Below, one piece after another: positions 1-54,931 of a stretch of DNA of 64,000 bases. The notes under the pieces were generated by a model that did not search any database, had not been told where the DNA came from, and saw only the letters and a list, made by a program, of their open reading frames with translations. Position 1 is the stretch's first letter; the number at the start of each line of letters is the position of its first letter. The position numbers and the translations under genes are program-made. Where the stretch lies: positions 1 to 64,000 of the forward strand of contig CAXIUT010000255.1 of NCBI GenBank assembly GCA_964035545.1, read 5' to 3'. This stretch comes from Bugula neritina. Its lineage: Eukaryota > Animalia > Bryozoa.

Positions 1-94
1 CCCAACCCCAACCCCAACCCCAACCCCAACCCCAACCCCAACCCCAACCCCAACCCCAACCCCAACCCCAACCCCAACCCCAACCCCAACCCCA
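1..94. repeat. Telomere (CCCCAA)n, left chromosome end
   Basis: Perfect C4A2 repeats from base 1; same unit as the Tetrahymena-type oligohymenophorean telomere. Confidence 0.97.
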
Positions 95-6009: not shown

Positions 6010-6369
6010 ATGTCCCAAGAAGGAGTATACACTTGGTAGGAAGTAGCCAAGCACAACAGCGACTCAGATATGTGGATAGTGATCAATGACAAAGTGTATG
6101 ATGTGAGTAAGTACCAGTTGGAGCATCCTGGAGGGCCGATTGTTTTATTGAATCATGCTGGCAAACATGCATCGATGGCGTTTTAGCAGGCGAGTCATTC
6201 AAAAAATGCTATTAATAACATCATGCCTAAACATTGTATAGGTAAGATCGATTCTAATTCGATTATGTCGGATGATCAGAGAGAAGAAACATCTTCTGCT
6301 CCGAGCATACTGTTGACTGTTTTTGTGGTTGTTGTGATATTGGCGGCTGTATATTCTTTGGCTTCCTGA
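6010..6369 (+). CDS. Cytochrome b5, tail-anchored (119 aa)
   Basis: YTWEEVAKHN, VYDVSKY, HPGG heme motif and C-terminal TM helix. Confidence 0.92.
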
Positions 6370-9400: not shown

Positions 9401-9716
9401 TAAAGACTTTTTTGTTGAAAAGTGCTCAGAAGACAATAGAATATGGAGCCTACATGTGCGGATTTATGTTAGACAAGTAGGATTGTAGTTTGAGGAATAA
9501 TCCTAATATATCACAAGGATATATTGATCAGATCCGTGATGATCGTCTTTCTCGAATGTTAGCTAATGACGTATTGAGTATGTTATCTAGTTGGACGAAG
9601 GGGAAGAGAAGATGTTATTTTTTGATGATGAGTAGACTGAGATATTGGTGTAAGTCGGACATATTATCTATCAGAACTTACTACAGGAAGTGTGTGCTGA
9701 CTTAATAATGTTTTGA
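6481..9716 (+). CDS. Large low-complexity protein with C-terminal DUF4378-like region
   Basis: IHNKAVFDALNETLDKERPYG...W and terminal EILVEVGHIIYQNLLQEVCADL; start and introns uncertain. Confidence 0.55.
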
Positions 9717-9773
9717 ATGTCTATTTATCCCCTCTTCTCTTCTTTATTATCATATTTTAATCTCGATATTGAC

Positions 9774-9881
9774 GTAGAACAAGCCATTAATTGAATATGA
9801 TAAGGCTCATGCTGGTGTAGAACAAGTGACTGATTGAATATGATAAGGTTCATGCTGAGGTAGAACAAGCGATTGATTGAA
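9774..9881. repeat. 43-bp minisatellite, ~2.5 copies (second copy 15121-15228)
   Basis: GTAGAACAAG units start at 9774, 9817 and 9860. Confidence 0.85.
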
Positions 9882-9897
9882 ATTAATAATAAATATA

Positions 9898-10263
9898 TCA
9901 GTACTGCATGTTGCCGATCTGTGTTTCCATGTCTTCTATCTTTTTTTCGAGATTCAACATCTTCTTTCTGAGACTATCTTGGTCTTAGCTGAGATACAAA
10001 GCATCTTTCTCCACTCTTTGGAAGAGAGCTTGGTTGTAGTTGATAGACTTGTCTACGTTCTACTAATATTTAGTCAGATCTTTGTCGTAGATCTCTTTGA
10101 TGTCGTCGAGATTGCGGTCGATGCTTTCGTAGGCTTGTTTGTTTTACAGTTTTATGTCGTCGAATAGCTTTGTGTTAGCTGCTATTTCTTCATTGATTGT
10201 CTTGAAGTAGGTTTATAACTTTTCTACTCTGCCTTTTATGGGCTAGTTACCTGTCTGTTCCAT
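9898..10263 (-). CDS. Small coiled-coil protein (121 aa), copy 1
   Basis: Intronless ATG..TGA frame, MEQTGNEPIKGRVEKLE...IEDMETQIGNMQY; near-identical copy at 15245-15610. Confidence 0.8.
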
Positions 10264-10712
10264 TTATATTATTATTTCAAATCACATCAAGTAAATCAAA
10301 ACCTAACTGATTAGAATATTTCATTTAAGATATATTTGATGTCATATGTGCTCTTTCGTGGATCCTTTTTATCTTGAGAATCATAAAATTGATAAGCTAA
10401 GAAATATTATTCTATTTTAAGCAATATTTTTAGAAGCATCATTTTTGAGATAGTTATAGATAAATTCTTCTAAAATATTATGACAAAATTAAAGAAAGAG
10501 AAGATTTTGGTCAAAAATATTTTACGATCTTTTCCAATATAAATAAAAAAGTCGATTAGTAAAATAAATTCTCTGAAAATATGATAATTTTAGTTAATTC
10601 AGATTTGATTTGTTTATCTTTATTGAGATAGTCTGTTTTTCTTTTTGTTATTATTCAATCGAAGAATAAGTTCTTAGAATATTAAATGGAAGAATATAAT
10701 AAAAAGCAACTT

Positions 10713-10738
10713 CAAGTGATTTCTATAATAAATGGAAG
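10713..10738 (+). promoter_or_regulatory. Family-specific upstream motif CAAGTGA-N9-10-TAAATGGAAG
   Basis: Recurs at 12803, 16061, 55370 and 59695; TAAATGGAAG lies 43-46 nt upstream of the ATG each time. Confidence 0.55.
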
Positions 10739-10774
10739 GTTTTTCTTTAATAAATCTATATAAGTTCTTTTTCT

Positions 10775-11974
10775 ATGAAAAATATTCATCGCCTACTACT
10801 CATAGTAGTACTGCTTGGTTGCATTGACGCCTACCGGTGCTCTAAAAAAGTTAACAACGTCATGAAGGGGTCGAACAACTTCATGAAAGGCAACAAAAAT
10901 CAACTTTATGGCAATGGAAATACTATGGTTGGAAACTACAACAAGTTTGCTGGAGACTTTAACTTTGGAGTTGGTGATGTTAATACCGTAGTTGGAAATG
11001 GAAATAAATTCAATGGAAACTACAATCAAGTCAAAGGAAATAAAAACAAATTCAAAGGAAATGCCAACAAAGTAGCTGGAAATTCTAATGAGTTCTTCGG
11101 AAGTTGCAATACTATCTTTGGAAGTGGAAACCAATTCAAAGGTAATGCTAACCAAGTAGCTGGAAATGGTAATCAGTTCTTGGGAAGTAACAATAAAGTC
11201 AAAGGACATCAAAACAAATTCAAAGGAAACTCCAACAAAATAGCTGGAAATTCTAATGAGTTCTTTGGAAGTGGTAATACAGTTTTTGGAAATCAAAATA
11301 AATTCAAAGGTAGCGCCAACAAAGTAGCTGGAAATTCTAATGATTTCCAAGGAAGTTTCAATACAGTTGTTGGTTCTGAAAATCAATTCAAAGGTAATGC
11401 TAACCAAGTAGCTGGAAATGGTCATCAGTTCATCGGAAGTAACAATAAAGTCAAGGGATATAAAAACAAATTCAAAGGAAGCTCCAACAAAATTGCTGGA
11501 TCAGGTAATTTCTTTGAAGGAAACAATAACATCATCTTTGGAAATGCCAACAAAGGCAAAGGTTCGAAGAACAAAATAGCTGGAAGTGGAAATGGCTTCT
11601 TAGGAAACTAAAATACCGTTGTTGGAAATTGCAATAAAATCAGAGGTCATAAAAACTCAGTCAAAGGATCAGGTAATCTTTTGAGTGGAAACAATAATGT
11701 CATGATTAGTGATCTTAATGGAGTTGCTCCTCCATTGCCAAGGCGACCAAGATGCAATAATAGCCGTCCTTATCCAATCAGACCACCAACATGTAGAGGA
11801 AGAGGTGGAAGAGGTGGAAGAGGCGGAAGATGTGGAAGAGGAAGAGGTGGAAGAGGAAGAAGAGGTGGAAGAGGAAGAGGAGGCTATAGAGGATATCGAG
11901 GAGGAAAAAGAGTATATAGAACTAGATGTTGTGGAGGAAAAAGATATTGTAGAGGAGGAAGATGCTACTGCTGA
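10775..11974 (+). CDS. Secreted NxVxG heptad-repeat protein 1 (399 aa) with Arg/Gly/Cys tail
   Basis: Signal peptide MKNIHRLLLIVVLLGCIDA, ~41 heptads, TAA at 11609 read as Glu joins two track ORFs, tail ends YCRGGRCYC-TGA. Confidence 0.9.
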
Positions 11975-12061
11975 GCTGAAGGAAATGATCGACCATACTT
12001 TAAAATCAATAATACTATATATTTAAACATAATACTATGGGGTTTATTATTCTTATTTGAA

Positions 12062-12154
12062 GGGGTTGGGGTTGGGGTTGGGGTTGGGGTTGGGGTTGGG
12101 GTTGGGGTTGGGGTTGGGGTTGGGGTTGGGGTTGGGGTTGGGGTTGGGGTTGGG
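12062..12154. repeat. Internal telomeric array (GGGGTT)n
   Basis: ~15 perfect units about 90 nt after the protein 1 stop. Confidence 0.95.
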
Positions 12155-12215
12155 TAAAAAGATAAACTATGATAAATAATGACTTTGAGATATATGTTAT
12201 TCAAAAAAATGACTT

Positions 12216-12358
12216 ATGCTTTCGTAGGCTTGTTTGTTTTACAGTTTAATGTCGTCGAATAGCTTTGTGTTAGCTGCTATTTCTTCATTGATTGTCTTGA
12301 AGTAGGTTTACAGCTTTTCTACTCTGCCTTTTATGGGCTAGTTACCTGTTTGTTCCAT
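12216..12358 (-). pseudogene. 5' fragment (~47 codons) of the small coiled-coil gene
   Basis: Matches ~10121-10263 and then loses homology abruptly at 12216. Confidence 0.75.
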
Positions 12359-12862
12359 TTATATTATATTATTTCAAATCACATCAAGTAAATCAAAACC
12401 TAACTGATTAGAATATTTCATTTAAGATATATTTGATGCCATAGGTGCTCTTTCATTGATCCTTTTTATCTTGAGAATTATAAAATTGATAAGCTAAGAA
12501 ATATTCTTCTATTTTAAGCAATATTGTTAGAAGAGTATTTTTGAGACATTTATTGATAGTTTTATCTGAAAATAGGCAAAAAAACAAAAGAGAAGATATT
12601 CAAAGTTAAAATAGATGAACTATTTCTCCAATAATTATAAAATCAATTAAGATAAAAAACTCGATAAATATAAGCTAACTTTAATTCAATAAGGTCTAAT
12701 TTATTTTTCTAATGAAAATTAAAGCATTATTTTTCGAATTTGATCAATCAAAGAATTAATTCTTGGAATATTAAATGGAAGAATATAATAAAAAAGCAAA
12801 TTCAAGTGATTTTCTATAATAAATGGAAGATATATGTTTAGTCAATTTATATAAATTCTTCT

Positions 12863-14563
12863 ATGAAAAATATTCATCGCCTACTACTCATAGTAGCACT
12901 GCTTAGTTGTCTTGATTCTTAACTGTTATATCCTTAGAGAACTAACAACATCTTGAAGGGGTCAAATAACTTCATGAAAGGTGACTAAAATTAGCTTTAT
13001 GGCAATAAAAATGTCATGGTTGGAGACTACAATAAATTTGCTGGAAATAGCAATGTAGGAATCGGCGACGATAATACTATAGTTGGAAATGATAATGGCC
13101 TCTTAGGAAGTTATAATACAGTTGTTGGAAATAAGAATCAGTTCAAAGGTGATGACAACAAAGTGGCTGGAAATAGCAATAAGTTCTTAGGAGATGAAAA
13201 TACAGTTATTGGAAATAGAAATAAATTCAAAGGAGATTCAAACAAGATACGTGGAAATGATAATGGCTTCTAGGGAAGTTAAAATACAGTTGTTGGAAAT
13301 AAGAATCAATTCAAAGGTGATTTCAACAAAGTGGCTGGAAATAGCAATAAGTTCTTAGGAGATGAAAATACAGTTATTGGAAATAGAAATAAATTCAAAG
13401 GAGATTCAAACAAGATACGTGGAAATGATAATGGCTTCTAGGGAAGTTATAATACAGTTGTTGGAAATAAGAATCAGTTCAAAGGTGATGACAACAAAGT
13501 GGCTGGAAATAGCAATAAGTTCTTAGGAGATGAAAATACAGTTATTGGACATAGAAATAAATTCAAAGGAGATTTAAACAAGATACGTGGAAATGATAAT
13601 GGCTTCTAGGGAAGTTAAAATACAGTTGTTGGAAATAAGAATCAATTCAAAGGTGATGACAACAAAGTGGCTGGAAATAGCAATAAGTTCTTAGGAGATG
13701 AAAATACAGTTATTGGAAATAGAAATAAATTCAAAGGAGATTCAAACAAGATACGTGGAAATGATAATGGCTTCTAGGGAAGTTATAATACAGTTGTTGG
13801 AAATAAGAATCAGTTCAAAGGTGATGACAACAAAGTGGCTGGAAATAGCAATAAGTTCTTAGGAGATGAAAATACAGTTATTGGACATAGAAATAAATTC
13901 AAAGGAGATTTAAACAAGATACGTGGAAATGATAATGGCTTCTAGGGAAGTTAAAATACAGTTGTTGGAAATAAGAATCAATTCAAAGGTGATTTCAACA
14001 AAGTGGCTGGAAATAGCAATAAGTTCTTAGGAGATGAAAATACAGTTATTGGACATAGAAATAAATTCAAAGGAGATTTAAATAAGATACGTGGAAATGA
14101 TAATAGTTTCAAAGGAAGTTACAATACAGTTGTTGGAAATAAGAATCAGTTTAAAGGTGATGACAACAAAATAGCTGGAAATAGTAATAAGTTCTTAGGA
14201 GATGAAAATATAGTTATTGGAAATAAAAATAAATTCAAAGGAGATTTTAATAAAGTTGTTGGAAGTTCTAATAATTTTTCAGGAAGTTTCAATTAGATCA
14301 AAGGGCATAAAAATAATTTCAAAGGTAGTTTTAACAAAATAGCTGGATCAGGCAATCTATTCAAAGGAAATAGTAATATAATTGTTGGAAATATAAACAC
14401 AGGAACAGGTTCTTTCAACAAAATCAAAGGGTTTGGAAATGGTTTTAAAGGAAACTTCAATAACATCGCTGGAAATTTAAATTCAGTCGTAGGTAATAAA
14501 AATTTTGTTCAAGGATCAGGAAATAGACTTAGCGGACATAATAACATCTTAATTAGTAAATGA
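12863..14563 (+). CDS. Secreted NxVxG heptad-repeat protein 2 (566 aa), no basic tail
   Basis: Signal peptide, ~77 heptads, continuous frame with TAR=Glu, ends NILISK-TGA. Confidence 0.88.
13091..14266. repeat. 168-nt (56 aa, 8 heptad) intragenic tandem repeat, ~7 copies
   Basis: GATAAT unit marker at 13091, 13259, 13427, 13595, 13763, 13931 and 14099. Confidence 0.9.
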
Positions 14564-15012
14564 AATTATTGATGAGCTGTAGGAAATGATCTACAATACT
14601 TTTAAATTAATAATACGAGAAATTTATTCATAATATTTTCAAATTCATTTTCTTTTATTTGAATATTGTTTAAGAATAGATATATTTTCGATGATAACTA
14701 TTGTCTTTAAAGAATATTGATAATATATATTGAGAAAGTAATGACTTTGATAGATATGGTGTTTAAAATCAAAATAATAAAAGTAGAAAAACTAAAAAAA
14801 TATGTTGTATCCGTAAGTCTGTACGTTAAGCCATTGCCACAAATCGAGTAATAACTAAATCTCTTCGTTATTGTCAACATGGATAAGGTACTATGAAGTA
14901 TATTTTTGAAGAAAAGTAAAAACTTCAGAAAAAGATGATAGATTTTTCAAACTAAACATTTATCTTTGTAAATTACAAGATGATAATACTTAAACGATAG
15001 TTAATCAGAACT

Positions 15013-15717
15013 ATCTATCAAAACTTACGACAGGAAATGTGTGCTGACTTAATAATGTTTTGAATGTCTATTTATCCCCTCTTCTCTTCTTTATTATCAT
15101 ATTTTGATCTCTATATTGACGTAGAACAAGTGACTGATTGAATATGATAAGGCTCATGCTGGTGTAGAACAAGTGACTGATTGAATATGATAAGGTTCAT
15201 GCTGAGGTAGAACAAGCGATTGATTGAAATTAATAATAAATATATCAGTACTGCATGTTGCCGATCTGTGTTTCCATGTCTTCTATCTTTTTTTCGAGAT
15301 TCAACATCTTCTTTCTGAGACTATCTTGGTCTTAGCTGAGATACAAAGCATCTTTCTCCACTCTTTGGAAGAGAGCTTGGTTGTAGTTGATAGACTTGTC
15401 TACGTTCTACTAATATTTAGTCAGATCTTTGTCGTAGATCTCTTTGATGTCGTCGAGATTGCGGTCGATGCTTTCGTAGGCTTGTTTGTTTTACAGTTTT
15501 ATGTCGTCGAATAGCTTTGTGTTAGCTGCTATTTCTTCATTGATTGTCTTGAAGTAGGTTTATAACTTTTCTACTCTGCCTTTTATGGGCTAGTTACCTG
15601 TCTGTTCCATTATATTATATTATTTCAAATCACATCAAGTAAATCAAAACCTAACTGATGAGAATATTTCATTTAAGATATATTTGATGCCATAGGTGCT
15701 CTTTCATTGATCCTTTT
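15013..15717. repeat. Segmental duplicate of ~9666-10370
   Basis: Near identity at offset 5347; carries the last codons of the DUF4378-like gene, the 43-bp minisatellite and the coiled-coil gene. Confidence 0.9.
15245..15610 (-). CDS. Small coiled-coil protein (121 aa), copy 2
   Basis: Same length and sequence as 9898-10263. Confidence 0.8.
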
Positions 15718-16120
15718 TTGTTATTAATTCTTGAATTTGAAAAAACAGAAAATATTCTTCTATTTTAAGCAATATTTTAAAAAGCATCATTTTTGAGATA
15801 GTTATAGATAAATTCTTCTAAAGATTTATGAGAAAATCATAAAAGAAGAGAAGATATTGGTCAAATATATTTTATGATATTTACCTTTTTAATAAAAACA
15901 TCAATTAGTCCAAAAACCTTGATAAAAATAAGCCAACTTTTCTTCATTAAGATTTTATTTGTCTTTCTGTTATTGAGATGATCTGATTTTTTTGTATTTT
16001 ATTGATCAAAGAATTATTTCTTTAAATAATAAAAAGAAGAATATAATAAAAAAGCAAATTCAAGTGAATTGTAACTATAAATGGAAGGATTTTATTTGAT
16101 AAATATCTTTAAATTCTTCT

Positions 16121-17101
16121 ATGAAAAACATTCACCACCTATTACTCATAGTAGTGTTGCTTAGTTGTCTTGATGCCTCTAGGGTTTGTCCTAAAAGAAT
16201 TAACAACATCTTAAGAGGATCGAACAACTTCATGAAAGGCAACAGAAATCAACTTTATGGCAATGGAAATACCATGGTTGGAAATTACAACAAGTTCGCT
16301 GGAAATAGCAACTTTGGAATCGGTGATGCCAATATTCTAGTTGGAAGTGGAAATAAGTTCAGAGGAAACTACAATCAAATTAAAGGAAATGGAAATCAGT
16401 TCCAAGGTTCTGCCAACAAAGTAGCTGGAAATGGAAATGATTTCTTCGGAAGTTGCAATACTATCTTTGGAAGCGGAAACCAATTCAAAGGTAATGCTAA
16501 TCAAGTAGCTGGAAATAGTAATCAGTTCTTTGGAAGCGGCAACACAGTCGTTGGAAGAAGAAACAAATTCAGAGGTAATTCTAACAAAATACGTGGATCA
16601 GGTAATTCTTTCTTAGGAAATAGTAATACCATCTTTGGATTTGGAAACAAAGGAAGAGGTTCTGGTAACAGAGTTGCTGGAAGCGGAAACGGTTTCTTAG
16701 GAAACTTTAATACCATCGTTGGGAAGTGCAATAAAGTCAAAGGTCATAAAAATGCACTGAAAGGATCAGGAAATCTTCTCACTGGAGTCGGCAATGTCCT
16801 GATTAGTGATAATTATGGAACTCCTAGATTGCCAAGGCGACCAAGATGCAATATTAGACGTACTTGTCAAGGACCACGACGATGTGTAATCAGAAATGGT
16901 AGAAAAATATGCTATAGGCCAAAACGAGGAGGAAGAACTTGTCAAGGACCACGACGATGTGTAATCAGAAATGGTAGAAAAATATGCTATAGGCCAAAAC
17001 GAGGAGGAAGAAGAAACTGTAGATTATATAAAAGAGGAAGAAGATGTAACAGAAGAAGAACAAAAGTTTGCAGAGGAGGAAGATGTTACTACAGATGTTG
17101 A
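16121..17101 (+). CDS. Secreted NxVxG heptad-repeat protein 3 (326 aa) with Cys/Arg tail
   Basis: Signal peptide, ~29 heptads, duplicated TCQGPRRCVIRNGRKICYRPKRGGR module, ends CRGGRCYYRC. Confidence 0.92.
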   Translation: MKNIHHLLLIVVLLSCLDASRVCPKRINNILRGSNNFMKGNRNQLYGNGNTMVGNYNKFAGNSNFGIGDANILVGSGNKFRGNYNQIKGNGNQFQGSANKVAGNGNDFFGSCNTIFGSGNQFKGNANQVAGNSNQFFGSGNTVVGRRNKFRGNSNKIRGSGNSFLGNSNTIFGFGNKGRGSGNRVAGSGNGFLGNFNTIVGKCNKVKGHKNALKGSGNLLTGVGNVLISDNYGTPRLPRRPRCNIRRTCQGPRRCVIRNGRKICYRPKRGGRTCQGPRRCVIRNGRKICYRPKRGGRRNCRLYKRGRRCNRRRTKVCRGGRCYYRC

Positions 17102-17469
17102 GCTGAAGAAATGATCTACCACACTTTTAAAATCAACAATAGTATTAATTAGACATAATTTTTAAAGCCTAATCTGATTTATTGAAAATTATGAAATATT
17201 TAGATTTTAAGATAATTTTATTGATAAAAAGTTGATAAAAGAATCACAAAGATAAATTATGATCAATAATGATATTCAAAATAAAGGTAAAAAATAGTTA
17301 GTATATTTTAGTTGTTACGAAAGTCGATGAGTTATTTTAGTTTTTATTGTAGTTAAGTAAACAAAGCTTCAAACAAGTAAGGTAGTTTCAATAGACTCAA
17401 TAATTGAATTTTTGAAATGAAAAAGTAGTAACATTATAATAATCGTTGATCTGAACCAATTTAAAAGCT

Positions 17470-17570
17470 ACCAGATCAAATATAACTCTCATATTACTTT
17501 TCTTCTCCTCCTTCTCCTTCTTTGATACTCTTTGTCAGGTTTTTTGATACCTACAACTACTCTTTCAAGC
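17470..17570 (-). pseudogene. Degenerate copy of the MYBBP1A-like gene 3' end
   Basis: CAGATCAA...CTTTGTCAGGTTTTT...TACTCT.TCAAG aligns by eye with 19151-19250. Confidence 0.55.
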
Positions 17571-17934
17571 AAAGTCAAACTTTTTGCAATATTTAAAATC
17601 ATTATGTTTCTTATTATTATTGATAAACTCATTTAACATCGTTCATATCAGTAAAAAAAGCTGAATTTTAGTGATTATTTAATATTTTATGAACTTTATT
17701 TTTTATATTTAATTTGATCAGTAAAAAAAACTTGATAAGAATCATATATTTTTTGTGAGGTAAGTTTAAAAAGTTATTCTGAATCAAAATGATCTTGTTT
17801 ATTTTGTTATTGACCAATAGAATAGTTAGTTTAGAAAATATCGAATAGAACAATATAATAAAATAGTAAATTCTAGTGTTTTCTAATCTAAAATTCTGAA
17901 TAGAACATTAGAATTTAGAATATAAACTCTTAAG

Positions 17935-18900
17935 ATGAAAACAGTTCAACACCTAGTCCTAATTGTAGTACTGCTTGGTTGTCTTGATGCCTCTACGATT
18001 CCTTCTTAATAGGTGAACAACATAATGAAGGGGTCTAACAACTTTATGAAGGGCAACAAAAATCAACTTTACGGAGATGGAAATTCAATGGTTGGAAATA
18101 AAAACAAATTTGCTGGAAATGACAATTTTGGAGTTGGAGATTCAAATATCCTAGTTGGAAATGGAAACATGTTCAAAGGTGACTAAAACAAAGTTAAAGG
18201 AAATGGAAATAAATTCAAAGGTACTGCTAACAAAGTAGCTGGTTCAGGGAATAAATTCTTAGGAAATCAGAATACTTTAATTGGAAATGGAAATAAGTTT
18301 AAAGGAAATAATAATAAAGTTGCTGGAAATGGAAATGGCTTTTAAGGAAATCGCAATACTATTATTGGAAATGGAAACCAAGGTTAAGGTTCTAATAACA
18401 AAATAGTTGGATCTGATAATGGCTTCGAAGGAGATTAAAATTTAATTGCAGGAAATGAAAACATGCTAAAAGGAAACGATAATACTATCATTGGACATAA
18501 TAATGCCATGAAAGGAGGAGGATACATTCTCCATGGAAACAAAAATACCATGATTTGTGAAGTATGTGGATCTCGTCCCCCTCCATTACCAGAGTTGCCA
18601 CCTTCTTATGAAAGACCGACTTCTTGTCTACCTCAAGGACTCCCACAACCATTTCAACAAAGAGGCAGAGGCAGAGGTAGAGGAAATAGAGGAAATAGAG
18701 GAGGTAGAGGAGGTAGAGGAAATAGAGGGAATAGAGGAGGTAGAAGAGGTAGAGGGAATAGAGGGAATAGAGGAAATAGAGGGAATAGAGGAGGTAGAAG
18801 AGGTAGAGGGAATAGAGGGAATAGAGGAAATAGAGGAAATAGAGGAGGTAGAGGATGTAGAGGAGGTAGAGGACAAACATATAGAGGTGGGTATTATTGA
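17935..18900 (+). CDS. Secreted NxVxG heptad-repeat protein 4 (321 aa) with (RGN/RGG)n tail
   Basis: MKTVQHLVLIVVLLGCLDA signal, ~26 heptads, Pro linker, RGNRGN repeats; in frame with track ORF 18463-18900. Confidence 0.9.
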
Positions 18901-18954: not shown

Positions 18955-19042
18955 GGGGTTGGGGTTGGGGTTGGGGTTGGGGTTGGGGTTGGGGTTGGGG
19001 TTGGGGTTGGGGTTGGGGTTGGGGTTGGGGTTGGGGTTGGGG
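18955..19042. repeat. Internal telomeric array (GGGGTT)n
   Basis: Perfect units about 55 nt after the protein 4 stop. Confidence 0.95.
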
Positions 19043-34410: not shown

Positions 34411-35537
34411 TCAGTAGCCCAACGCTTACATTATTGCATCAGCTATTTTAGGCTTAAAAGAAGATATCTTATTGTTGGAAACGTCTGGGTGACCTCGATT
34501 GTTTAGTACAACGAATACTATCTTTTTTTATTTGTCTGCCCATGCCATTGCTCCTGTAGATCCATCGTGACCAAAGCATTTTGACATCTTTGAGGTGGGA
34601 CATTGAGTGCCAAAACCTAGTCCCATAGTATTGTTATAAGGAAGTCCTTCTACTTTGGTTGTGAATAGATCTACGACAGATTGTGGCAGGACTCGAGTTG
34701 ACTCTGTTGGTATTTTACCGCCTGAAACTAGGATTCTCATGAATCTGGTCAGATCATCAGCATTGGTAAACAAGCCAGAATGCCCGCCGACTCCTCCAAA
34801 GAAGTATGCTAATCTTTAATGAGCTTATCCTCTGATGATTCTTTTTCTTATTTCTAGGTTATAAAATTGCTACCTTTGTCATATTAGGTTGGAGCTATCT
34901 TATACCATTCACTTTGGGGAGGACTGAAGTTGGTATTGGACAACCCTGCGAATATTTTGTTTTGTTAGAAATATTTTTAGAAAGTTTGACGGGAGATGTT
35001 GGCGACTATTTTACTTAATAGATGGAAACCTAGGTTTGAATATTGGAATTGCGTGCCTACTGGAAAATCTGGTTTGGCGAAAGTTATATATTACCATACA
35101 TCTTCTGTTGTTTTAGGAAGAGGTCCTGGGTAGTCGTACTTCAGGCCTGAGCTATGAGTCATCAAGTTGGTGATAGTGGTATTTCCTTTGCGATTGACGT
35201 CGTAGTTGGCTATGTACTTCGAAACCAAGTCGCTTGGTTTGATCAAATTGCTTCCAAACAAGTGCATGACTCCGAAAGTGGTGGCCATGACTTTGGTGAT
35301 CGATGCGATGTCGTATTTTGTTTAGTTATTGACTTATACGTCTTGCAGTTGGTAGTTGTAGCTCAAGTGTCCATAGTTTTTTCGATAAAGGATGTGGGTT
35401 TCGTTGGCAACGGTGACGCTTCCGCCTGGAAAGACTCTGTCTCTGACTGCTTAGTCGAAGAGGTCGTTGACTTTGGTCCAGTCAGCACAAAGAGCGGATA
35501 TTAGGAGAAGACTTGTTAGTAGTATGAAAACTTTCAT
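34411..35537 (-). CDS. Secreted beta-lactamase-family serine hydrolase (AmpC/AmiE-like)
   Basis: Signal peptide; SxxK (ASITK), LMTHSSGL, YxN (YSN), GGVGGHSGLFTNADDL, FGHDGSTG. Confidence 0.88.
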
Positions 35538-36072: not shown

Positions 36073-37333
36073 TCATTCTTCTATTTCCAATAGCATTGAA
36101 GAATTATCTTTTTCTGCCTGTTATTTAATAGGAGGGATAGTGAAGTACTTGATATTTCCTTTGTTCCAATCTTATACTACTAATTTGGCTCCTTGCTTCA
36201 TCTAGGGAATTCCTCCTTTTCCTAACTTTCCATAGGCTCTACATATTTTAGCTAAGAAGTCTAGTGGACTCTTGAAAGGTTCTATTTTGTAGTATTCTAA
36301 TAGTTGTTGTTCTGATACTTTCTATAGTATAACTTCAACTACTTCTTCAAGGTTGTCTCCATATTTGGCAGTATTTTGTAGAATTAGTTGATTTCTGGAA
36401 AGATCTTTCTAGAATATGACTCCAGGACAATCTAATAATTTAACTTGTTTGTCTAATTTGACTTCTTGAAGGGCCTTCGTGCAGCCAGGAAGACTAGATA
36501 CATCACAAGTTTTGCTTCTTTTCAAACTATTAATTACACTACTTTTGCCTACATTAGGATAGCCTATCAGACCAACAGTTACAGCTCTACTGAACCCATC
36601 TAGCTTAGATAGTTGTTTGATAAGTTGCATTAAATGTTCTGTTCCAATAGCTTTAGTAGAATGGATCAAAGTATCAGCCATATCAGTACTATCAGCGATT
36701 GATTTCTTGTATAAGTTGAAAGATGAGAGATTATTTCCTTGCGATTGAAGATTGGCTTTAAACATAACTACTGGGTACTATCTTCTGAGATATGATTGCC
36801 ATGCATAGGCATTTTAAATGGGTACTAAGTCGATTTTATTGAGAATAAGGATGATTTTTTTATCAGGCATTGATAGGATCTTTTTTTAGATGTTTTTGCA
36901 TCGGCAACTTAAAGGATCTCTTGCGTCTAGCACTTATAAAATTATATCACAACTTTATATGATTTTTTTCATTTCTTTCCAATATTTTCCTGAATCGAAT
37001 TCTTTGTTTTATAAGTATTCTTTTTCTTCTGTTTATATCTCGATGTTTTTTTAAACAAAGGAAGATTAAATTATGAGTTAGTTCATTGATAGTGTTTTTT
37101 ACTTCTAAAGATTTTGTACTATCTTATGTCTATCAGCATTTTTATTTTTGAGGGAATCGACTATTTTGTTTTTGATGAAAGATAGATTAGGAGGTCGAGA
37201 TAGATCATTTTTATTGACTAAATTTAATTAAAAAGGTACGTCTTTTGACTGATCCTTGTCCTTTTTGTATTTTGAATTCTTTACGGTTTTTTCTACTTTC
37301 TAATAAGTGTTTCTGATTTTCTTGTTTACCCAT
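36073..37333 (-). CDS. GNL3: Nucleostemin/Nug1 circularly permuted GTPase
   Basis: DIILEVLDARDP, LNKIDLVP, GYPNVGKSSVINSL, LLDCPG. Confidence 0.9.
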
Positions 37334-42951: not shown

Positions 42952-43020
42952 GGGGTTGGGGTTGGGGTTGGGGTTGGGGTTGGGGTTGGGGTTGGGGTTG
43001 GGGTTGGGGTTGGGGTTGGG
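42952..43020. repeat. Internal telomeric array (GGGGTT)n
   Basis: Perfect units in the gap between the WD40 and TTLL genes. Confidence 0.95.
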
Positions 43021-45294: not shown

Positions 45295-47246
45295 TCATAT
45301 CACTTTTGCACTTAGTATTTTTACGTTTATAAGTGGTTTTTAGGATTTATCGGTCTTTAGTTTGTTTATTTCGCAAGCTGTCTCGATCCCTTTGATTACT
45401 CGGCCGAAAATTGTGTGTTTGTTGTCTAGCCATGGACAGGCAATCACTGTTATAAAGAATTGAGAGCCATTGGTGTTGTGACCTCGATTGGCCATGGCAA
45501 GGACATATGGACGGTCAAATCGGTATCTTTATGGCCTGAGTTAGTCTTCAAAAGTGCCTCCCCAAATAGACTATCCTCCTGTTCCATCTCCTCTCGGGCA
45601 ACCACTCTGGATCATGAAGCCTTTGACTGATCGATGGAAGATCATTCCATTGTAGTATCCTTTTTTGGTCAGTTTTATGAAGTTTTAACATGTTTTTGGA
45701 CAGTCTTATAGGTAAAGTAGAACATGTATGTCTCCCATAGTTGTTTGAAGGACTACTTAATTTTGTTTTTAGATGATTTTAGGTTGAGTAACAGTCAATG
45801 ACTATTCTTTTGTATGTTTTTAGTTGATGATATCTCTGACTACGACAACTTCTGACTCGAGCTAGGGTGTTCTTCTGGAGAAGAGATAGAATCTTCCTCT
45901 TCTGAAGGCTGTGGCTATTATGAGAGGATCAGAAGCTTTTCTTTATCCATGTATGTTGGCATTTCCATTGGGATTTCTCATTTGTTTACCTTGGTAGACA
46001 CAAACTCGAACAAATCTTTCAGTTTATTTTTTACCAATAACTCTTTATATACATTTATTAAAAGTGAATATATTTTAATTCCATGAAATGAGCTATAAAT
46101 AACTAATCTTTATGATTAATCGGGGTTGGGGTTGGGGTTGGGGTTGGGGTTGGGGTTGGGGTTGGGGTTGGGGTTGGGGTTGGGTTTTCTTTTAGTATTC
46201 ATGTTCGTCTAAACTGAACATGGCGTGTTAAGGATGGGAGCTATCTTATTGAATCTTTATCGTTTATTTTATGTTTTATGATATTTCGTGTAGTAATTTA
46301 CCTGTTTTTAAGCTGAATATTCTTATTATTTTATCTTTTAGAAGTACTGCTAGATAGTTTCCTGAAGGACTTATGTTTAATGACAAAGGGATGCTATTGG
46401 CTTTAAGCAATTTGAGAAAATCTGTTTATATTTTGCATTTGTAGGCTAGATGGGTTGGAAAGTCAAATGTATTTGGATTCCATACTTCAATAAAGGCTCT
46501 TTAATCTATTGATATACAAATATTCAAATTCCAATTCATTTTGATAAATCTAATGGGATGCTTATGGAAAGATACCATATTTATTACATGAGTATCTTAT
46601 TTTTTAGTATCAATTTATTCTTTTTCATCGAGTTGGTTGCCTATTATCTCCTAATCATCTTATATCTCTTCAGTAGGAGAAGATTAAGGATCAATTATCC
46701 ATATTTTACCTGTCTTCTCTTAACTTATCGCTATTAAAGACCAATCTTTTGATTATTGAGATATAAATTAACAACAACTAGGAACAAAATTCAACTTTAG
46801 CGATAGTTTTAGGTCGCAGTTGAGAATATCAAATATTTTTAAGGTTTTATCCAATCCTACAGTACAAAGTAAATCATGATTTTTAGATAAAGAAGAGCCA
46901 GTGATAAGACCGCTATGAGCTTTAAAATTTTTAGTAAATTATACAAGGTTGAATACTTTTTTCCAGAACTTGATATGTCCATCAACGCTGAAAGTGATCA
47001 GCACATCTGTTTTAGAGGAACAAATGACGTTGTTGATAGTTTATCTGTGCATTAAACTGATTTAGTAGAGATCTGAGGAGGGAAGTCCATCCAAAAGAAG
47101 TTCTTGGTAGTCCACTTGATAGCATTAAATATACTTTTTTGGAGTTTACGAGTATCAGGTCCAATGATTTATTCTTCTTATGTTTGAAGAGGTCTTTTTT
47201 TAGACTATGGGTCATTTGGTACCTCTTTCTCTTATTATTTTTGCAT
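45295..47246 (-). CDS. PPWD1: WD40 plus cyclophilin protein, interrupted by telomeric repeats
   Basis: [70 protein letters not shown]. Confidence 0.9.
46122..46186. repeat. Internal telomeric array (GGGGTT)n inside PPWD1
   Basis: ~11 units with PPWD1 coding sequence on both sides. Confidence 0.95.
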
Positions 47247-48477: not shown

Positions 48478-48582
48478 TTTATATAGTTAAAAATATATAT
48501 AGAATAACATTCAAATTAAAGATGATTAATATCAATAAATAAGTGATAAAAATATATTAAATGCATTGTGATAGTTGATCAT

Positions 48583-51500
48583 TCATTGTACTAAGTCTGG
48601 TCTGCGATTTATGCGAATTTGTTGAAGATTTGTTCGACTGAAGCCTGCTTAATAGTATACTGTTGAATTCCGAAAGATTCTTTTTCTTTCTAGAAGAACG
48701 AGAACATCTTCCCGATATTAGGCTTTCCTCTTATCTTTAGTCGAATAAAAGTCTGTAGTCTCTATAACTCTTCAACATCGCCACCTAGTAGTTTCTTCAA
48801 CTCGTCTGTTACCTTTCTTAGCATTGCACAAATATGCAGATACTCAACTACGGTGTAGACTTAGATTTATTTTCTTGCCTTAAGAGTGAAGTAGATGTAA
48901 TTGCCTGCTCCTTTCTCAGAAATGCCTAACCTATCTTCAGGCTAAGCTTTGTAGGTTTAAAGGAAGTTATCAAGCTGTGAGTCTTTTATGATCTGAGGCT
49001 CTATCCTTCTGGCTCTCATTATCTAAAGTAGATTCCTTTTCTAAGGGTTTTTCAGTTTTAGTTAGACTTCAAGACCTTCTCCATACTTGTTCTTTATGTG
49101 TTGAGCAGTGCCAATACACTGGAAATTGCCTTTTACCATGATACCTAGTCTTGAAGAAAGAGCTTCAGCTTACTACATTGAGTGAGTGGTTAGAACAACT
49201 GTTGCATCTTTATTCTGAGTGGCTACTCTAGCTATAACTCTCCACATAAAGCGTCTTGCTCGAGGATCCATTCCTGTGGATGGTTCATCAAGAAAGACTA
49301 TCCGAGGATTGCCAATCATAGCCATAGCTACTGACAGTTTACGTTTGTTTCCTCCTGATAAAGTGCCTGATAGCTTGTCAGCGTATTAAGTCAAATCGAG
49401 TTCTTCTATTTTCCTGTTGATAGCGGCTTAACTGTTCTCTTGAGATAGAGATTTCAAGTCATAGAAGAGTTCTAGTTGTTATTTGACTGTCAGATTTTCA
49501 ATTAAGGCATCGAATTGAGGACAATAGCCTAAGTCTTATCGAACTAGGTCGATGTTATCACTGATTCTCAACCCTTTGAAGTAGCTTTAGCCTGCAGTCG
49601 ATGAAACTTAGCCTGCTAGCATCTTGAAAGTAGTTGTTTTGCCTGCTCCATTGATGCCAAGTAAACCAAAAACTTATCCTCTTTTGACTCCAAAGGAAAG
49701 ATTATCAACAGCTACTTTGTGCTTTTTAGGTCCATCAACCAGATATACTTTTCTGAGTTCTTTCGATAAAATTTAGTAGTCAGAAGGATTGGCAGCAATA
49801 GCTGTTTAGTTTTATCTTTTTACATCCTATTCTGCAATAACTTCTGTATCTGTAATTTATGCCTCAGAACGAGAGAGACATCTCATGCAAGACTATGTAT
49901 TTTGTAGCTTTTAGATCACAAGAAGAAGAATAAAGAATAGTACACTTTGTATCGCTAGGAATAATATAGGCGCCAATGCTATTTCAGTGTCAAATGTTTA
50001 CATTGTTTTTCCGTTATTTTAATTTTGACCATATATATTAACACTTCCAGTGTTAATGATTCCTTATCCGAAAGCAAAAGAAGGGTAGATTCGGAAGATC
50101 CAAGAAAGAGCTCTTCCGACTGAGTTTGAACTTTAGATAACTCTGAGGACGAAAGTGAAGATAGGTAATAGTCCTCCAAGAGTAAAAGTGATAAAATAGT
50201 AGGCTGCTTGTGCATTTCCATAGTCTTTGTAAATAAAAGCTGCCATATATGTGAAAGAAATATAAGATAGTCCATAAAAAATAAAGAGAAGCCAAGTCGC
50301 TGCAAAGGCTGATCCTTCTGTAATAGATTATATGGCCATAGCTTTTGCTATTCCAATGCCAATAGATGCTACTATGAAATAAAGGACAAAATCATAGATG
50401 AAGTTTGCTGTCCAGTAAGCAGAAATGCTCATTCCACTAACTATTTGTTGATGTTTCGACCTATCTTATCTTTCTTTGACTATGAAAGATATGATGGAAG
50501 CAAACTTGAAAGCCAAAGCAATTGAGAAGATGAAAGAAGCAAAGAATCCTGAGATAGCGTTATTAATCTGTAGTTGTTGGAATGTTCTTGGCATTGGATG
50601 GTTTGATACTGAGATTGTTACTGATCTGCCAAGATTTTGATTTAAAATAGTTTAAGATGCTAGACTACCTAAGAAAAATGGACTTGTAGGACTACGAGTA
50701 TGGACTAGAGTATTGTACTGATAGATAGTGTTTGCCCCACTTGTAGTTGTTGCATCAGCAAAGAAGACACCTCCTTTGAGAGTCGATTGAGCTTGTTTTT
50801 TTGGGAAAAGAAAGTTCTTATCGAAAGTAGCTGCAGTTGTATCAGTAGTGTCAGCCTGTACTGATATTTTAGATCCATATTTTCCATTGAGATATGTTTC
50901 TATATTGGTTGCTCTACTAGAAACATCTGCTCCGATAGGTACTACTACTGGATTTTGTTAACCTAGATAAGTGTCCAAGTCCATTGTTTGTTACGGGTAA
51001 TCTACAATAAATGATACTCTAAGTAAGAAAAGAGCAAGAAGAATGATGATAAAGGGTAAAACAAGTTCAAAGATAAAGCTTTTGATGTCTCTTAAAATTA
51101 CTCTTAGTCTTTTCAAGAAAGTGGCTTTGAAATGAATCCAGAATTTTAAAAGACAGCCTTCTTATCTTGGTATCCGATCAAAATCAACTATTGTTGCTTA
51201 ACTGTCGATCATCTTCTCATTTGAATATTCCTATTTTTTATTTGATATTAATTGGTTTTATTTGAGTTTCATTGGACTTCCTTGCCTTCTTGGACTTGAT
51301 TACTTGCTTTTGACTTAAATGATTTAATTTTCAATGAGTTAGTTAGCCTTTTAATGTTTTTCTTTTCTATTTTGTTCTACTTAAGCTCCTACATTCAGAA
51401 AAACTTCTTCAAGTGTTGTTATACTGATGCCATATTCAAGGTATCTTAGAGTGTTTTTTTTATCATCAAGTTATGCGAACATGTTCGGGAAGTGAGATAC

Positions 51501-53820
51501 ATCTACGATAGGTAGTTGCATGGCTAGGTCTGTTGCTACATTGGTTAGAACCTAGCAACCAGGCACATGCTTCTTGACTGTTTAGATAATTGGTCCTGAG
51601 TCTCTATCTGGAGAATCTTTGGTGAAGGTTATTGTGTATCCTACTCCAAACTTATTCTTGAGGAAGATGCTTGAACCGCAGCACATCAACTTTCCATCGC
51701 CCATAATACCAATCCTATCTCCTAAGTAATCGGCTTCGTCCATGAAGTGAGTAGTTAAAATAACTATTCTATCGTTTTTGTAGCTTTTAAGTAAGTCCCA
51801 GATATAACGTCTAGCAGAAGCATCCATTCCTGAGGTTGGCTCGTCTAAGATGATTACTTTCGATCTCCCTGCAAAGGCAATAGCAACTGATAGTCTTCTT
51901 TTCTGTCCTCCTGAAAGGTTCTTAGAATACTCTTCTCTTTTCTAGTTAAGGTTGACATCTGCTATTAGTCTCTAGACTTCATCTATCAGTTACTGTCCTT
52001 AAAGTCCTTTGAAAGAAGAAAATAGCTCAAGGTGCTATTGAACTGTCAGGTCCTAGTAGAGAGTATCATGTTGAGGACAGACTCCTAGATTCTATCTGAT
52101 TTTTTGAGTTTAGGTTTATCCTAGAACTGAGAGATACCCATCAGATGGAGATGTCATGCCTGATAGCATAGAAATAGAAGTAGTTTTTCCTGCTCCATTA
52201 TGTCCAAGTAAAGCAAATATCTGACCTTGGAACATACTAACAGTCAGGTCATCAACAGCTAGTGTAGAATCTGACCCACTTCCAAACTACTTTCTAAGTC
52301 CGACTATTTCAATAGCTCTGTTATGTTGTTCTTCTGCTACTAGGGCTTATTCAACTGGCTAGTACTTATCTGAGTAACCTGGTAGTAACTGCTTTTATCT
52401 TTTGCGTCTATTTTTTTATTATACAGAGATGCTGGTGTTGTCTGAATTGCAACAGAAGAGAGGATGACGTTTTGACCCCCATTCATTAGGGATGACCTGA
52501 TCGAGATACCATGTTAGAAATAGATAAAATATAGTATTAAGAACAAAACTTAGGAGTGCATATCCTATGACGTAGTGATTAGTGGTTGAACTAAAATCTG
52601 GAGTTATTTGGAAGCTTTAAGCATAGACCATAGTCTGGAAGGCTAAGACCATGGCTGCATGAGGAACAATACTAAGAGCTCCATTGACTCCGATTGAAGG
52701 ATTATCTGAATTGGTGGCAATAAAGGATAGAATATATTGAACGAGGAAGAAGAGCAAGGAGATGACAACACCTATTTTAGCTCTTGTAATAAAGACTTGT
52801 ATGAAGAAGACTTGAACAATAAGGACAATAGCAAAGAAGATATAGAGAATTAAGGGTATCATAATGGGTACATTGCTAAGAGATCGAACGAATAGAATCG
52901 AACAGAGTAAGCCAATTACTAGATAGACCATGAGGTATCGAAAGAACCAGCTGAAGAAGTATGTACTTCCTTTCATGCCCATAATATACATACTTTATCT
53001 GACTTTGGTCTATGTTATGTTATTTGTACCTCTTTCTAAGTGAGCATGATCGAAGTTTGTCTGAGATAGAGTAATAGAAGAGGCAGAACTACTAAAAATC
53101 CAACAAATCCTCCTAAATTCTCATAGATATTATCCAATGTGAATGTTTATTGGTAGAGTGGTGAGACATCATTTTGAAAATAGTTAGTATTTGCTGTTTA
53201 TACTTGAAGAATGGCGTTGTTGACTAGAGTATTAGCTCCTATCATTCCTTTTGATAAAGCTTTCTAATAAATTTCGAGATCAATTCCTTTATCTTGAGTT
53301 AGATCTAGTGTTGGAATCGGTCCATCTGTTCTATCTTCATTTAGACTGACATTAAACCTTAGTTTGTAGTCATAGTTTCCAGATGATGAACTCTGAACTG
53401 TTATACCGAAACACATTCTGACAGAGTTTTGATAATTTTCACTTCTGATGTAGGTTTAAAAATCAGATTAAGAACTAAAGATATTGGTAGAATATCCTAG
53501 ACCAGTTACTAAGCTGTCGATTCTTGTCACTAGAGCATCCCCAGCTGGTGCTAGTCCTATTTATTGATTGGTACAATTTCTTAATGGTTGAATAGATACT
53601 TAAGAAAAGATGAGTTTGCGTCGATACTTGTGATAGCGCGTGAATATTATGCGTTTCCGATGAAGGATTGTTCGTTAGTTGTGGTTGGAGCATCAATTCC
53701 TTTGATCACAGAAACAAAGAGGATGAAGATGACTGGTACTAGTATTTCTAGGATGTTTCCCAAAATTCCTCTTTTATAGAGTAGCCAGTTTTTGTAAAAC
53801 AGAGCTGAGAGCTGTCCCAT
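48583..53820 (-). CDS. ABCA-subfamily full transporter
   Basis: Two NBDs ([29 protein letters not shown] and [20 protein letters not shown]), [18 protein letters not shown], two TMDs. Confidence 0.95.
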
Positions 53821-54271
53821 TATAATTATATTCTTTTTTGTTGGGATAAGACCACTTATATCATGATGAAAATTAATATTTCTGATCAGATTAAAAATCT
53901 ATTAATAAAAATTAAGTTTGAATAATCAAGTGGAACAACTAATAAACTGTCAAAAAATTATTTTAGTTTTGATAAATAACTATTTTCAGTCATTAAGAGT
54001 CATTTTTTTAATCTTTTCTGACCAATAGCATCTATCAATATGGTGTCTTTGTTCTTTTTTACTTACTTTTTTTGCTTTAAATCTTCAATTATTCTCATTT
54101 GCAGATTGAATTCTATCGAATTATGTTTTGATCTATCTGATTTTGAGACATTTTCACTACTTTTTTTGATTCTAAATGATGTTTTTTGTTCTCTCTATCG
54201 ATCTATTTTTATATCTAAAGATTAAATATCGCCTATTAAAAAAATAAACTACTTTATTCATGTTTGAAATA

Positions 54272-54408
54272 TAACTATTGATAGATGAAACTGTTGATAA
54301 GATATAACTATTGATAAGATATAGCTATTAATAAGATGAAACTATTGATAAGATGTAACTGTTGATAATGTATAACTATTAATGAGATGCAACTGTTGAT
54401 AAGATATA
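54272..54408. repeat. 17-bp minisatellite AACTRTTGATAAGATAT, ~8 copies (again at ~58596-58732)
   Basis: Period of 17 read directly from the sequence. Confidence 0.85.
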
Positions 54409-54449
54409 GTTGTCCAAAAGATATATTTGTGATCGATTCTTTACTATAA

Positions 54450-54931
54450 ATATCACAGAAGAAGCTATCAGTCTTCTAAACAAACGCTTTGTACCTTCTA
54501 GTATTGTTTGATAAATCATATTCTTTGGCAACTACCTAAGACAGTTACTATCTTTGTCTAAAATCCTTTTTCTTTATTCTAAATTTGAGATTGATTTTTT
54601 GTTTGAATTTTAATTCTTGGAATATTAAGTTAGTTAGCTGACTAAGTAGGCGGTGTCGACTGTGATAGTTAGCTCTCTTTTGTATCTCGCTTTGAAAGTA
54701 TTGAGACCCCATTGATCTCCCAACTGACTAGCCAAGACTGATAACCTTGACTGCATGTTTTTTTTTATCTTTCAAAAGCTTCGAATCGATAAGCCAACTC
54801 TTTTCGATCTACAAGAAAGCTTTAATCTTGACTATTTGTTTTTATAAGTATCAACTCAATGTCATTGATGATCCTTTCGAAAAATAGTCTCTTAAAGACA
54901 TCATCATAGACCAAGATTCTTGATTATCCAT
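54450..54931 (-). other. Possible hypothetical gene or gene remnant in the duplicated unit (copy at ~58774-59255)
   Basis: Coding-like composition and a long TGA-free frame, but no motif and unclear boundaries. Confidence 0.3.

Follow-up and report, generated by a model that had tools for sequence, protein, structure and literature searches.

Four tandem paralogous genes of a ciliate, here called g1 to g4, lie at 10775-18900 in a 64,000-nt stretch of DNA filed under the bryozoan Bugula neritina (positions 1 to 64,000 of contig CAXIUT010000255.1, GenBank assembly GCA_964035545.1), hereafter the window. Each gene codes for a probable signal peptide followed by a long series of seven-residue repeats that is predicted to fold into a beta-solenoid rod, and the host organism reads TAA and TAG as Glu. 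A first-pass annotation of this DNA had described four paralogs with a signal peptide and strict heptads, whose third position mostly alternates between V/I and F. Both points hold: there are 40, 76, 28, and 25 heptads in g1 to g4, respectively, and the alternation runs over most of each protein. It had further described a Pro linker and an Arg/Gly/Cys tail in three of the copies, the tails being swappable and different in every copy. The linkers and tails are indeed present in those three, but the tails of g1 and g3 prove to be homologous, having diverged by repeat expansion.

Genes and genetic code

The reading frames of g1 to g4 were taken with TGA as the sole stop and with TAA and TAG read through (Table 1). 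With a GC content of about 0.3, the window is rich in A and T. TGA alone closes its long frames, inside which many TAA and TAG codons are found, a pattern that fits ciliates with reassigned stops. The meaning of these codons can be judged from the PPWD1-like WD40-cyclophilin gene of the window, which aligns end to end and without introns with orthologs at 52% (L005) and 67% (L007) identity. Facing its TAA and TAG codons, the orthologs have GAA 24 times, GAG 13 times, TAA or TAG 18 times, GAY six times, and CAA five times. Among database fragments of cyclophilin, E occupies the FED-x position in 13 of 15 cases, while the KS-x-KP position has D in 38 and E in 21. The middle codon of the P-x-P repeats in another gene is TAA in 17 instances, GAA in seven, and GAG and CAA in one each. 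Because of the ortholog codon pairing, the cyclophilin positions, and these P-x-P middle codons, we read TAA and TAG as Glu and TGA as the only stop in the source organism. This agrees with the translation table 30 recommended in the first-pass annotation (37 GAA/GAG codons against five CAA), which we take to be the peritrich nuclear code, although other lineages may use it as well. Codon composition in the window (GAR 4.6%, TAR 5.6%, and CAR 3.3%) is by itself a mere hint that TAR is Glu. In conserved genes, TAA and TAG make up 4-6% of the codons. The tRNA and Rfam scans of the window were empty, and no suppressor-type tRNA was found in them.

The PPWD1-like orthologs (L005, L006, L007, L009, and L010) belong to related organisms that also read TAA and TAG, and come from Logan SRR26348421 and SRR13208891, NCBI GCA_020049755.1, and JGI 3300055001. 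Their public gene calls are fragments of 50-110 aa, because the standard code was used. No heptad genes were found at the ortholog loci L005-L010.

The heptad rod and its domain family

All four proteins start with MK(N/T)(I/V)(H/Q)(R/H)L(L/V)LIV(V/A)LL(G/S)C(I/L)D(A/S), which reads as a basic n-region followed by a hydrophobic core of 11 residues, with small residues ahead of the likely cleavage site. The heptads that come after it have the form N-x-[FVILM]-x-G-[NSDH]-x, and 169 of them are in register over the four genes. Position 1 is N in 167 of the 169 and position 5 is G in every one, while position 6 is N, S, D, or H in 161. Position 3 is hydrophobic in 161 heptads (F 63, V 43, I 28, L 16, and M 11) and G in the other eight. 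The alternation of V/I with F at this position can be followed in the g1 string, for example ...VFVFVFIFVFVFIFVFVFVFVF. In g3, all 28 heptads are in register, and the maximum reached by 10,000 residue shuffles is seven. The periodicity is also present in the DNA, where Tandem Repeats Finder (TRF) gives periods of 42, 84, 168, and 252 nt. Short caps close the heptads, namely NVMISD in g1, NVLISD in g3, and NTMICE in g4. In g2, positions 13084-14247 hold about seven copies of a 168-nt unit (56 aa, eight heptads) with 95% matches by TRF. This array is a recent expansion within that single paralog.

The heptads belong to a curated domain family. PF21300 (LbR_Ice_bind, “Grass antifreeze beta roll”), for which the curated gathering cut-off is 30 bits, matches a piece of g1 with 72.1 bits (E 4.3e-20) and g3 with 49.5 bits (E 4.6e-13). 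Short pieces of g2 (88 aa) and g4 score 27.8 and 20.6 bits, respectively. The hallmarks of the family, an NxVxG heptad with an invariant Asn ladder and a Gly turn, are found in the heptads of g1 to g4. Of the sequences in the PDB, 3ULT from Lolium perenne matches best (E 8.4e-7), with the heptads in register. The first-pass annotation had linked the repeat to the Lolium perenne ice-binding protein (LpIBP), and both the profile scores and the PDB match bear this link out; membership of the LpIBP family rests on the sequence profile. The NCBIfam scan returned nothing relevant.

Structure prediction points the same way. The AlphaFold2 model of g3 residues 24-233, made with the paralog alignment, has a predicted local distance difference test score (pLDDT) of 89.4 and a predicted template modeling score of 0.82. 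It contains a short strand every seven residues, in a 5+3 strand pattern with a period of 14. The full-length g3 model made without an alignment has a mean pLDDT of 62.7, with values of 80-88 across residues 70-190, and Foldseek gives it weak generic solenoid matches, the BpaC and CbpF heads among them. When the domain model is searched against BFVD, seven solenoid models of an adhesin- or tailspike-like kind match at E<=1e-3, the best TMq being 0.68. A beta-solenoid fold is supported by these models.

Relatives of the repeat are numerous. A phmmer search with the stop-free piece of g1 against 1.84 billion representatives returned 829 proteins at E<=1e-3, of which 80 were at E<=1e-10 and the best at 2.4e-32, the similarity being limited to the heptad region. 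PF21300 is present in 10 out of 10 of the matches scanned, where its partners include TGL (protein-glutamine gamma-glutamyltransferase), FecR, YadA stalk and anchor, and RING fingers. A protein from a prokaryote-like metagenome contig (P0044) has the C-terminus GHDNVIISD, a cap as in the g1-g4 family. A signal peptide, heptads, and a polycationic tail do not occur together in any of the 150 best phmmer matches. The length-restricted protein homology search with full g3 found nothing, and the same search with the stop-free g1 piece gave nine weak matches. The six of these that were inspected are NATIGNGNW-repeat proteins with VPEP...-type C-termini, presumably cyanobacterial PEP-CTERM proteins by their look. 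An exact look-up of the g3 sequence found no record, and two metagenome scans came back empty, one made by protein and the other with a degenerate DNA pattern for the conserved block near the N-terminus. The literature search found no description of the LbR_Ice_bind domain in ciliates, of peritrich stalk proteins, or of the g1-g4 architecture. The first-pass annotation's view that no such family had been described therefore stands for the architecture and the lineage alone, but not for the repeat domain, which is a curated and widespread Pfam family with 829 representative clusters. Among the relatives searched, the succession of a signal peptide, a long beta-roll, a Pro linker, and an Arg/Gly/Cys tail appears to be new.

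If positions 1, 3, and 5 of the heptad are taken as ladder, core, and turn, then positions 2 and 4 can be judged to point outward. Lys is the commonest residue at both, with K 61, T 29, and Q 23 at position 2 and K 48, A 26, and V 25 at position 4 (n = 169 each). It thus fills 109 of the 338 outward positions, about one-third of the rod surface. The V/I heptads present a face of T/K and A/V/I, a partly hydrophobic stripe that is A/V/T-rich but interrupted by K/R, and the F heptads present a K/Q/E face. The net charge of the repeat regions is +27 in g1, +33 in g2, +21 in g3, and +10 in g4. Such a surface suggests polyanion binding, and the rods may possibly self-associate along the hydrophobic stripe.

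The same surface bears on whether these proteins bind ice or inhibit its recrystallization, as do the grass namesakes of PF21300. Family membership and the 3ULT match would fit such an activity, and the V/I heptads do carry outward T in 25 of 71 cases (position 2) and A, V, or I in 48 of 71 (position 4). We nevertheless find it very improbable. Judged by sequence, the heptads do not form a flat face of Thr, Ser, Val, and Ala, as the first-pass annotation had already suspected from their outward residues. Lys is the commonest of these (61/169 and 48/169) while the LpIBP repeat aligned with them has almost none, which argues against an LpIBP-like ice-binding face. Ice binding would also leave the polycationic tails and Pro linkers unexplained, and most of the PF21300 proteins found here are adhesin-like or fused with unrelated domains.

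Linkers and cationic tails

In g1, g3, and g4, the rod is followed by a Pro linker and then an R/G/C tail (91, 102, and 119 aa, respectively). The tails have net charges of +26, +36, and +28 and contain 8, 12, and 4 Cys, in the same order, with R/G/Y-rich stretches such as GGYRGYRGGK and RGGYY. Those of g1 and g3 are homologous at both ends (LPRRPRCN ... CRGGRCY), and what separates them is internal repeat expansion: g1 has (RGG)n, and in g3 a stretch of 25 aa is exactly duplicated. The g4 tail is an (RGN/RGG)n repeat. The two exact 25-aa repeats of g3, RTCQGPRRCVIRNGRKICYRPKRGG, are encoded by a 75-nt tandem repeat at 16862-17012 (TRF), and each finishes in an R-x-K-R motif (RPKR). In the full-length AlphaFold2 model, hairpins are placed in the g3 tail at residues 254-265, 279-290, and 314-325, with a moderate pLDDT of about 66-73. 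The Pfam scan found no families in the tails. In the PDB there were no matches for the g3 tail, and for the g1 tail there was RGG-type low complexity alone. The tails evolve quickly, through repeat change and not by swapping.

As read from their sequences, all tails lack a hydrophobic C-terminus, and for this reason a glycosylphosphatidylinositol-type anchor is unlikely. The remaining paralog, g2, has neither linker nor tail. After its NILISK-TGA end, the 3' untranslated region (UTR) common to g1-g3 comes almost at once. Since this UTR sits almost directly behind the stop, the linker and tail of g2 were lost by deletion.

Duplication history and selection

Alignment of the window with itself shows the duplicated units. 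Positions 9665-11242 match 15012-16591 at 88%, and 10121-11479 match 12216-13570 at 79%. The g1-g3 units are tandem duplicates that reach about 1.1 kb upstream, and each includes a coiled-coil-looking open reading frame (ORF), complete upstream of g1 and g3 (Table 1) and truncated upstream of g2, where the copy begins near 12216. A block of 500 nt at about 9800-10299 is 100% identical to one at about 15147-15646, with flanks at 73-94%. It contains the minus-strand ORF of 121 aa, and its identity suggests gene conversion or strong constraint. A 43-nt tandem repeat of 2.6 copies also stands upstream in two units. An artefact of the window edge or of random concatenation was considered for the paralog array but does not account for it, as unit homology runs across the G4T2 tract at 12062-12151.

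The ratio of nonsynonymous to synonymous substitution rates (dN/dS, Nei-Gojobori) is 0.29-0.49 across all g1-g4 pairs. For g1 and g3, the ratio is 0.72 in the tail and 0.22 across the 156 leading codons of the alignment. Purifying selection acts on the rods, and the paralogs have also conserved their start, their signal peptide, the context of the stop, and the 3' UTR. These values matter for the possibility that the array is decaying or non-functional repeat DNA that merely retains open frames, to which the lost g2 tail, the many TAA/TAG codons, and the very recent internal expansion might seem to point. That is hardly credible. Four TGA-free frames of 321-566 codons have been kept although the DNA is AT-rich, no pair reaches a dN/dS of 0.5, and N and G are near-fixed at their heptad positions (167/169 and 169/169). 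The conserved elements named above also speak against decay, and the TAA/TAG codons are ordinary sense codons that make up 4-6% of conserved genes.

Proposed function

The reading that we favor, though tentatively and with somewhat less than even confidence, is that these are secreted rigid cationic rods with flexible Arg-rich, Cys-bearing tails, which bind and cross-link polyanionic extracellular material. The structural part of this reading is much firmer than the functional part. A cleavable signal peptide would first send the protein outside the cell. The heptads would form an Asn-ladder beta-roll of the LbR_Ice_bind type, with two seven-residue strands per 14-residue coil and with V/I and F on the two sides of the core. 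At two heptads per coil, the rods would have about 12 to 38 coils and measure about 6 to 18 nm. In three copies, a short Pro linker would then lead to a disordered Arg/Gly tail with 4-12 Cys and some Tyr. Rod and tail may bind acidic polysaccharide, DNA, or bacterial or substrate surfaces, the Cys would permit disulfide cross-linking, and the proteins would be building blocks of an extracellular matrix, a cement, or an adhesive. The tail-less g2 would be a non-anchoring variant.

Several points weigh against this reading. No polyanionic partner was identified. As g2 is tail-less, the tail is not essential to every member. The host is placed by its genetic code and the G4T2 repeats alone, and the structures of sessile peritrichs may not apply to it. 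When the domain model was searched with Foldseek against the PDB, nothing was found at E<=1e-3, the matches being weak generic solenoid or leucine-rich-repeat ones. Because there was no significant match, the coil geometry and handedness of the model are to be taken as predictions. Of the AlphaFold and Foldseek check proposed in the first-pass annotation, the beta-solenoid prediction was borne out (pLDDT 89.4) while 3ULT was not recovered, falling outside the top 50. Finally, a polycationic Cys-rich tail is equally compatible with an antibacterial role.

In that role, the proteins would be secreted to bind bacteria and to agglutinate or kill them, either for prey capture and digestion or for defense, and cleavage of the tail at basic sites may release cationic hairpin peptides that are stapled by disulfides. 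The exact 25-aa repeats of g3 end in R-x-K-R, the same tail has hairpins modeled at moderate pLDDT, the tail changes at a much higher rate than the rod (dN/dS 0.72 vs. 0.22), and the tandem family adjoins telomere-type tracts, all of which would fit. However, basic cleavage motifs are expected by chance at such an Arg content, and searches of the PDB and Pfam matched no tail to any peptide. An anionic propiece is usual in the known precursors of cationic peptides, whereas the pro-region here is itself strongly cationic (+10 to +33). Moreover, the RGN/RGG repeat that forms the g4 tail is almost free of Cys, and g2 is tail-less. We consider an antibacterial role unlikely.

The favored reading of matrix-binding rods can also be put in a more specific form. 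The peritrich stalk has an extracellular sheath, a fibrillar matrix, and rod-like batonnets (PMC6189993). No identification of the proteins of the stalk sheath, matrix, or batonnets was found in the literature search. The rods of g1 to g4, together with the poly-Pro/poly-Arg family described below, may be building blocks or cement of the peritrich stalk sheath, batonnets, holdfast, lorica, or cyst wall, assembled via electrostatic attachment to an acidic matrix and via disulfides. We put this forward as a doubtful proposal; if true, the rods would be a eukaryotic counterpart of the bacterial beta-roll adhesins.

If g1 to g4 are matrix or adhesive components of any kind, they would give a first access, at the level of molecules, to the way in which sessile ciliates construct and cement what lies outside their cells. 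They would also add a cationic protein rod of a new kind to those available for materials work. The PF21300 repeat is known mostly from grass antifreeze proteins and bacterial adhesins, and here it is found as long Lys-studded rods in a ciliate. Since public gene calls cut such proteins under reassigned stop codons, the family is probably under-counted in ciliates.

A second, probably secreted family

Two copies of another family, whose signal-peptide-like start is similar to that of g1 to g4 and whose overall plan is the same, are found further along the window (Table 1). In copy 1, a very long poly-Pro/PEP linker leads to an Arg-rich tail, with 187 R in the last 461 aa. Copy 2 has a (PS)n run, PxP/PEP repeats, and an R/K/G-rich tail with 84 R and 86 K in 327 residues. 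The Pfam scan of the N-terminal piece of copy 2 (59817-60380) gave no match, PF21300 included. A tandem duplication of about 1.9 kb (53893-55791 vs. 58219-60115) takes in the 5' flank and the start of the family, and because its two halves are 99.6% identical it appears to be very recent. The DNA of this family accounts for the GC and AT-skew spikes at 56-58 kb and 60-62 kb. The copy 2 tail also has a stop-free alternative frame.

Long Ser-Pro or poly-Pro, extensin-like rods are typical of extracellular matrix proteins. Because the second family has (PS)n/poly-Pro rods with Arg-rich tails, a structural or adhesive reading is favored for both families. That two unrelated-looking families in one window share a cationic-tail plan would also be expected of cargo for a regulated secretory organelle, extrusome- or mucocyst-like, in which a polycation condenses with an acidic partner and then expands or sticks on release; the signal peptide and extreme charge agree with this. 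Nonetheless, no gene for an acidic partner was seen in the window, and homology searches gave no similarity to known ciliate granule proteins, which leaves granule cargo as a quite improbable explanation.

Telomere-type tracts and neighboring genes

Besides the terminal C4A2 run, the window contains four internal G4T2 tracts of 60-90 nt, all in one common orientation (Table 1). Where the g3 unit has an AT-rich spacer of about 65 nt, the g1 unit has the tract at 12062-12151, past which the two units are homologous again. The tract at 46122-46181 substitutes in frame for about 26 conserved codons of the PPWD1-like gene, which read LNTEKDLEITKEFLFNPNVEFNQTEE in the L007 ortholog. These tracts are possibly the macronuclear ends of alternatively fragmented chromosomes that were merged in the assembly, interstitial repeats left by break healing, or an artefact of assembly or polishing. 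The neighboring genes include a cytochrome b5-like gene, a hydrolase-like gene, a GTPase gene, and an ABC-transporter-like gene, in which TAA and TAG are 2-6% of the codons.

Table 1. Positions of the genes, repeats, and tracts discussed in the text (numbering of the 64,000-nt window)
Feature	Position	Strand	Description
g1	10775-11974	+	399 aa, TGA stop; ORF with TGA as sole stop
g1, signal-peptide-like start			residues 1-19
g1, heptads and cap	10856-11713	+	40 heptads, NVMISD cap
g1, in-frame TAA	11609-11611	+	n = 1
g1, linker and tail	11714-11971	+	Pro linker, (RGG)n/Cys-rich tail
g2	12863-14563	+	566 aa, 76 heptads, 13 in-frame TAA/TAG, NILISK-TGA end
g3	16121-17101	+	326 aa, 0 in-frame TAA/TAG, TGA stop
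g3, heptads and cap	16205-16810	+	28 heptads, NVLISD cap
g3, linker and tail	16811-17098	+	linker, Cys-rich cationic tail
g4	17935-18900	+	321 aa, 6 in-frame TAA/TAG, TGA stop
g4, heptads and cap	18019-18561	+	25 heptads, NTMICE cap
g4, linker and tail	18562-18897	+	Pro-rich linker, (RGN/RGG)n tail
Coiled-coil-looking ORF	9898-10263	-	121 aa; part of the duplicated unit upstream of g1
Twin of coiled-coil-looking ORF	15245-15610	-	121-aa ORF twin, upstream of g3
43-nt tandem repeat	9770-9881 and 15117-15228		2.6 copies, upstream in two units
Terminal C4A2 run	4-93		perfect
(GGGGTT)15	12062-12151	+	perfect; begins 88 nt past the g1 stop
(GGGGTT)14	18955-19038	+	perfect; begins 55 nt past the g4 stop
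G4T2 tracts	42952-43017 and 46122-46181		perfect; orientation as other internal tracts
Second family, copy 1	55433-58078	+	881 aa, signal-peptide-like MKGIKVLLLIVVLLGSLNA, Gly/Asn-rich 19-aa repeats
Second family, copy 2	59757-62000	+	747 aa, plan as copy 1
Second family, copy 2 tail	61267-62064		stop-free alternative frame
Cytochrome b5-like gene	6010-6369	+	neighbor
Secreted serine-hydrolase or beta-lactamase-like gene	34749-35537	-	neighbor
GTPase gene	36073-37086	-	neighbor, MMR_HSR1 domain
PPWD1-like gene	45295-47052	-	WD40-cyclophilin
ABC-transporter-like gene	48579-52991	-	neighbor, large

Comparison with known systems

LpIBP is described as a protein with NXVXG/NXVXXG motifs, 14-15 residues to a turn, and a core in which Asn forms two rows (PMC5744647). 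With this protein and its structure 3ULT, the rods of g1 to g4 share the NxVxG heptad, the Asn ladder, and, as predicted, about 14 residues per coil. They differ in having strict 7+7 repeats without the eight-residue variant, and with their 25-76 heptads they are 2 to 5 times longer. Their core alternates V/I with F, and their outward positions are Lys-rich instead of Thr/Ser/Val, whereas the LpIBP repeat aligned here is nearly Lys-free. A Pro linker and a polycationic tail have been added in g1, g3, and g4, and the host is a ciliate.

The left-handed parallel beta-roll heads of the trimeric autotransporter adhesins YadA, BadA, and BpaC are similar in that they have 14-residue beta-roll repeats and form an extracellular adhesive rod, as is proposed for g1 to g4. 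Among the relatives found there is a bacterial protein (P0035) that joins PF21300 to a YadA stalk and anchor. In the Pfam scan of g1 and g3, PF21300 was found alone, the YadA anchor, the coiled-coil stalk, and ESPR being absent, and the proteins have a probable eukaryotic signal peptide instead.

Another ciliate protein can be compared directly. It is encoded on NCBI GCA_054403495.1 contig JBQVBP010013046.1 and in Logan SRR34691352 (L002/L003, gene from 1150 and 1311, respectively), and its public call is a 238-aa product (P0135) cut at the first TAA. It resembles g1 to g4 in its signal-peptide-like start, its in-frame TAA and TGA stop, and its dozens of N-x-[VI]-x-G heptads (33 strict). Unlike them, it carries an S/T/P/Q-rich segment ahead of the repeats and a Gln-rich, non-cationic tail, and both the F alternation and the NV(L/M)ISD cap are missing.

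Two further systems are similar in plan. In cnidarian minicollagens, which are proteins of extracellular or organelle walls, a rigid rod is joined by a Pro linker to a terminal Cys-rich cross-linking module. Sandcastle worm cement contains polybasic Gly/Tyr-rich proteins, whose polycationic Gly/Tyr/Arg/Lys segments bind polyanions. Both are analogies with g1 to g4 without sequence kinship, and the rod here is a predicted beta-roll, not a collagen.

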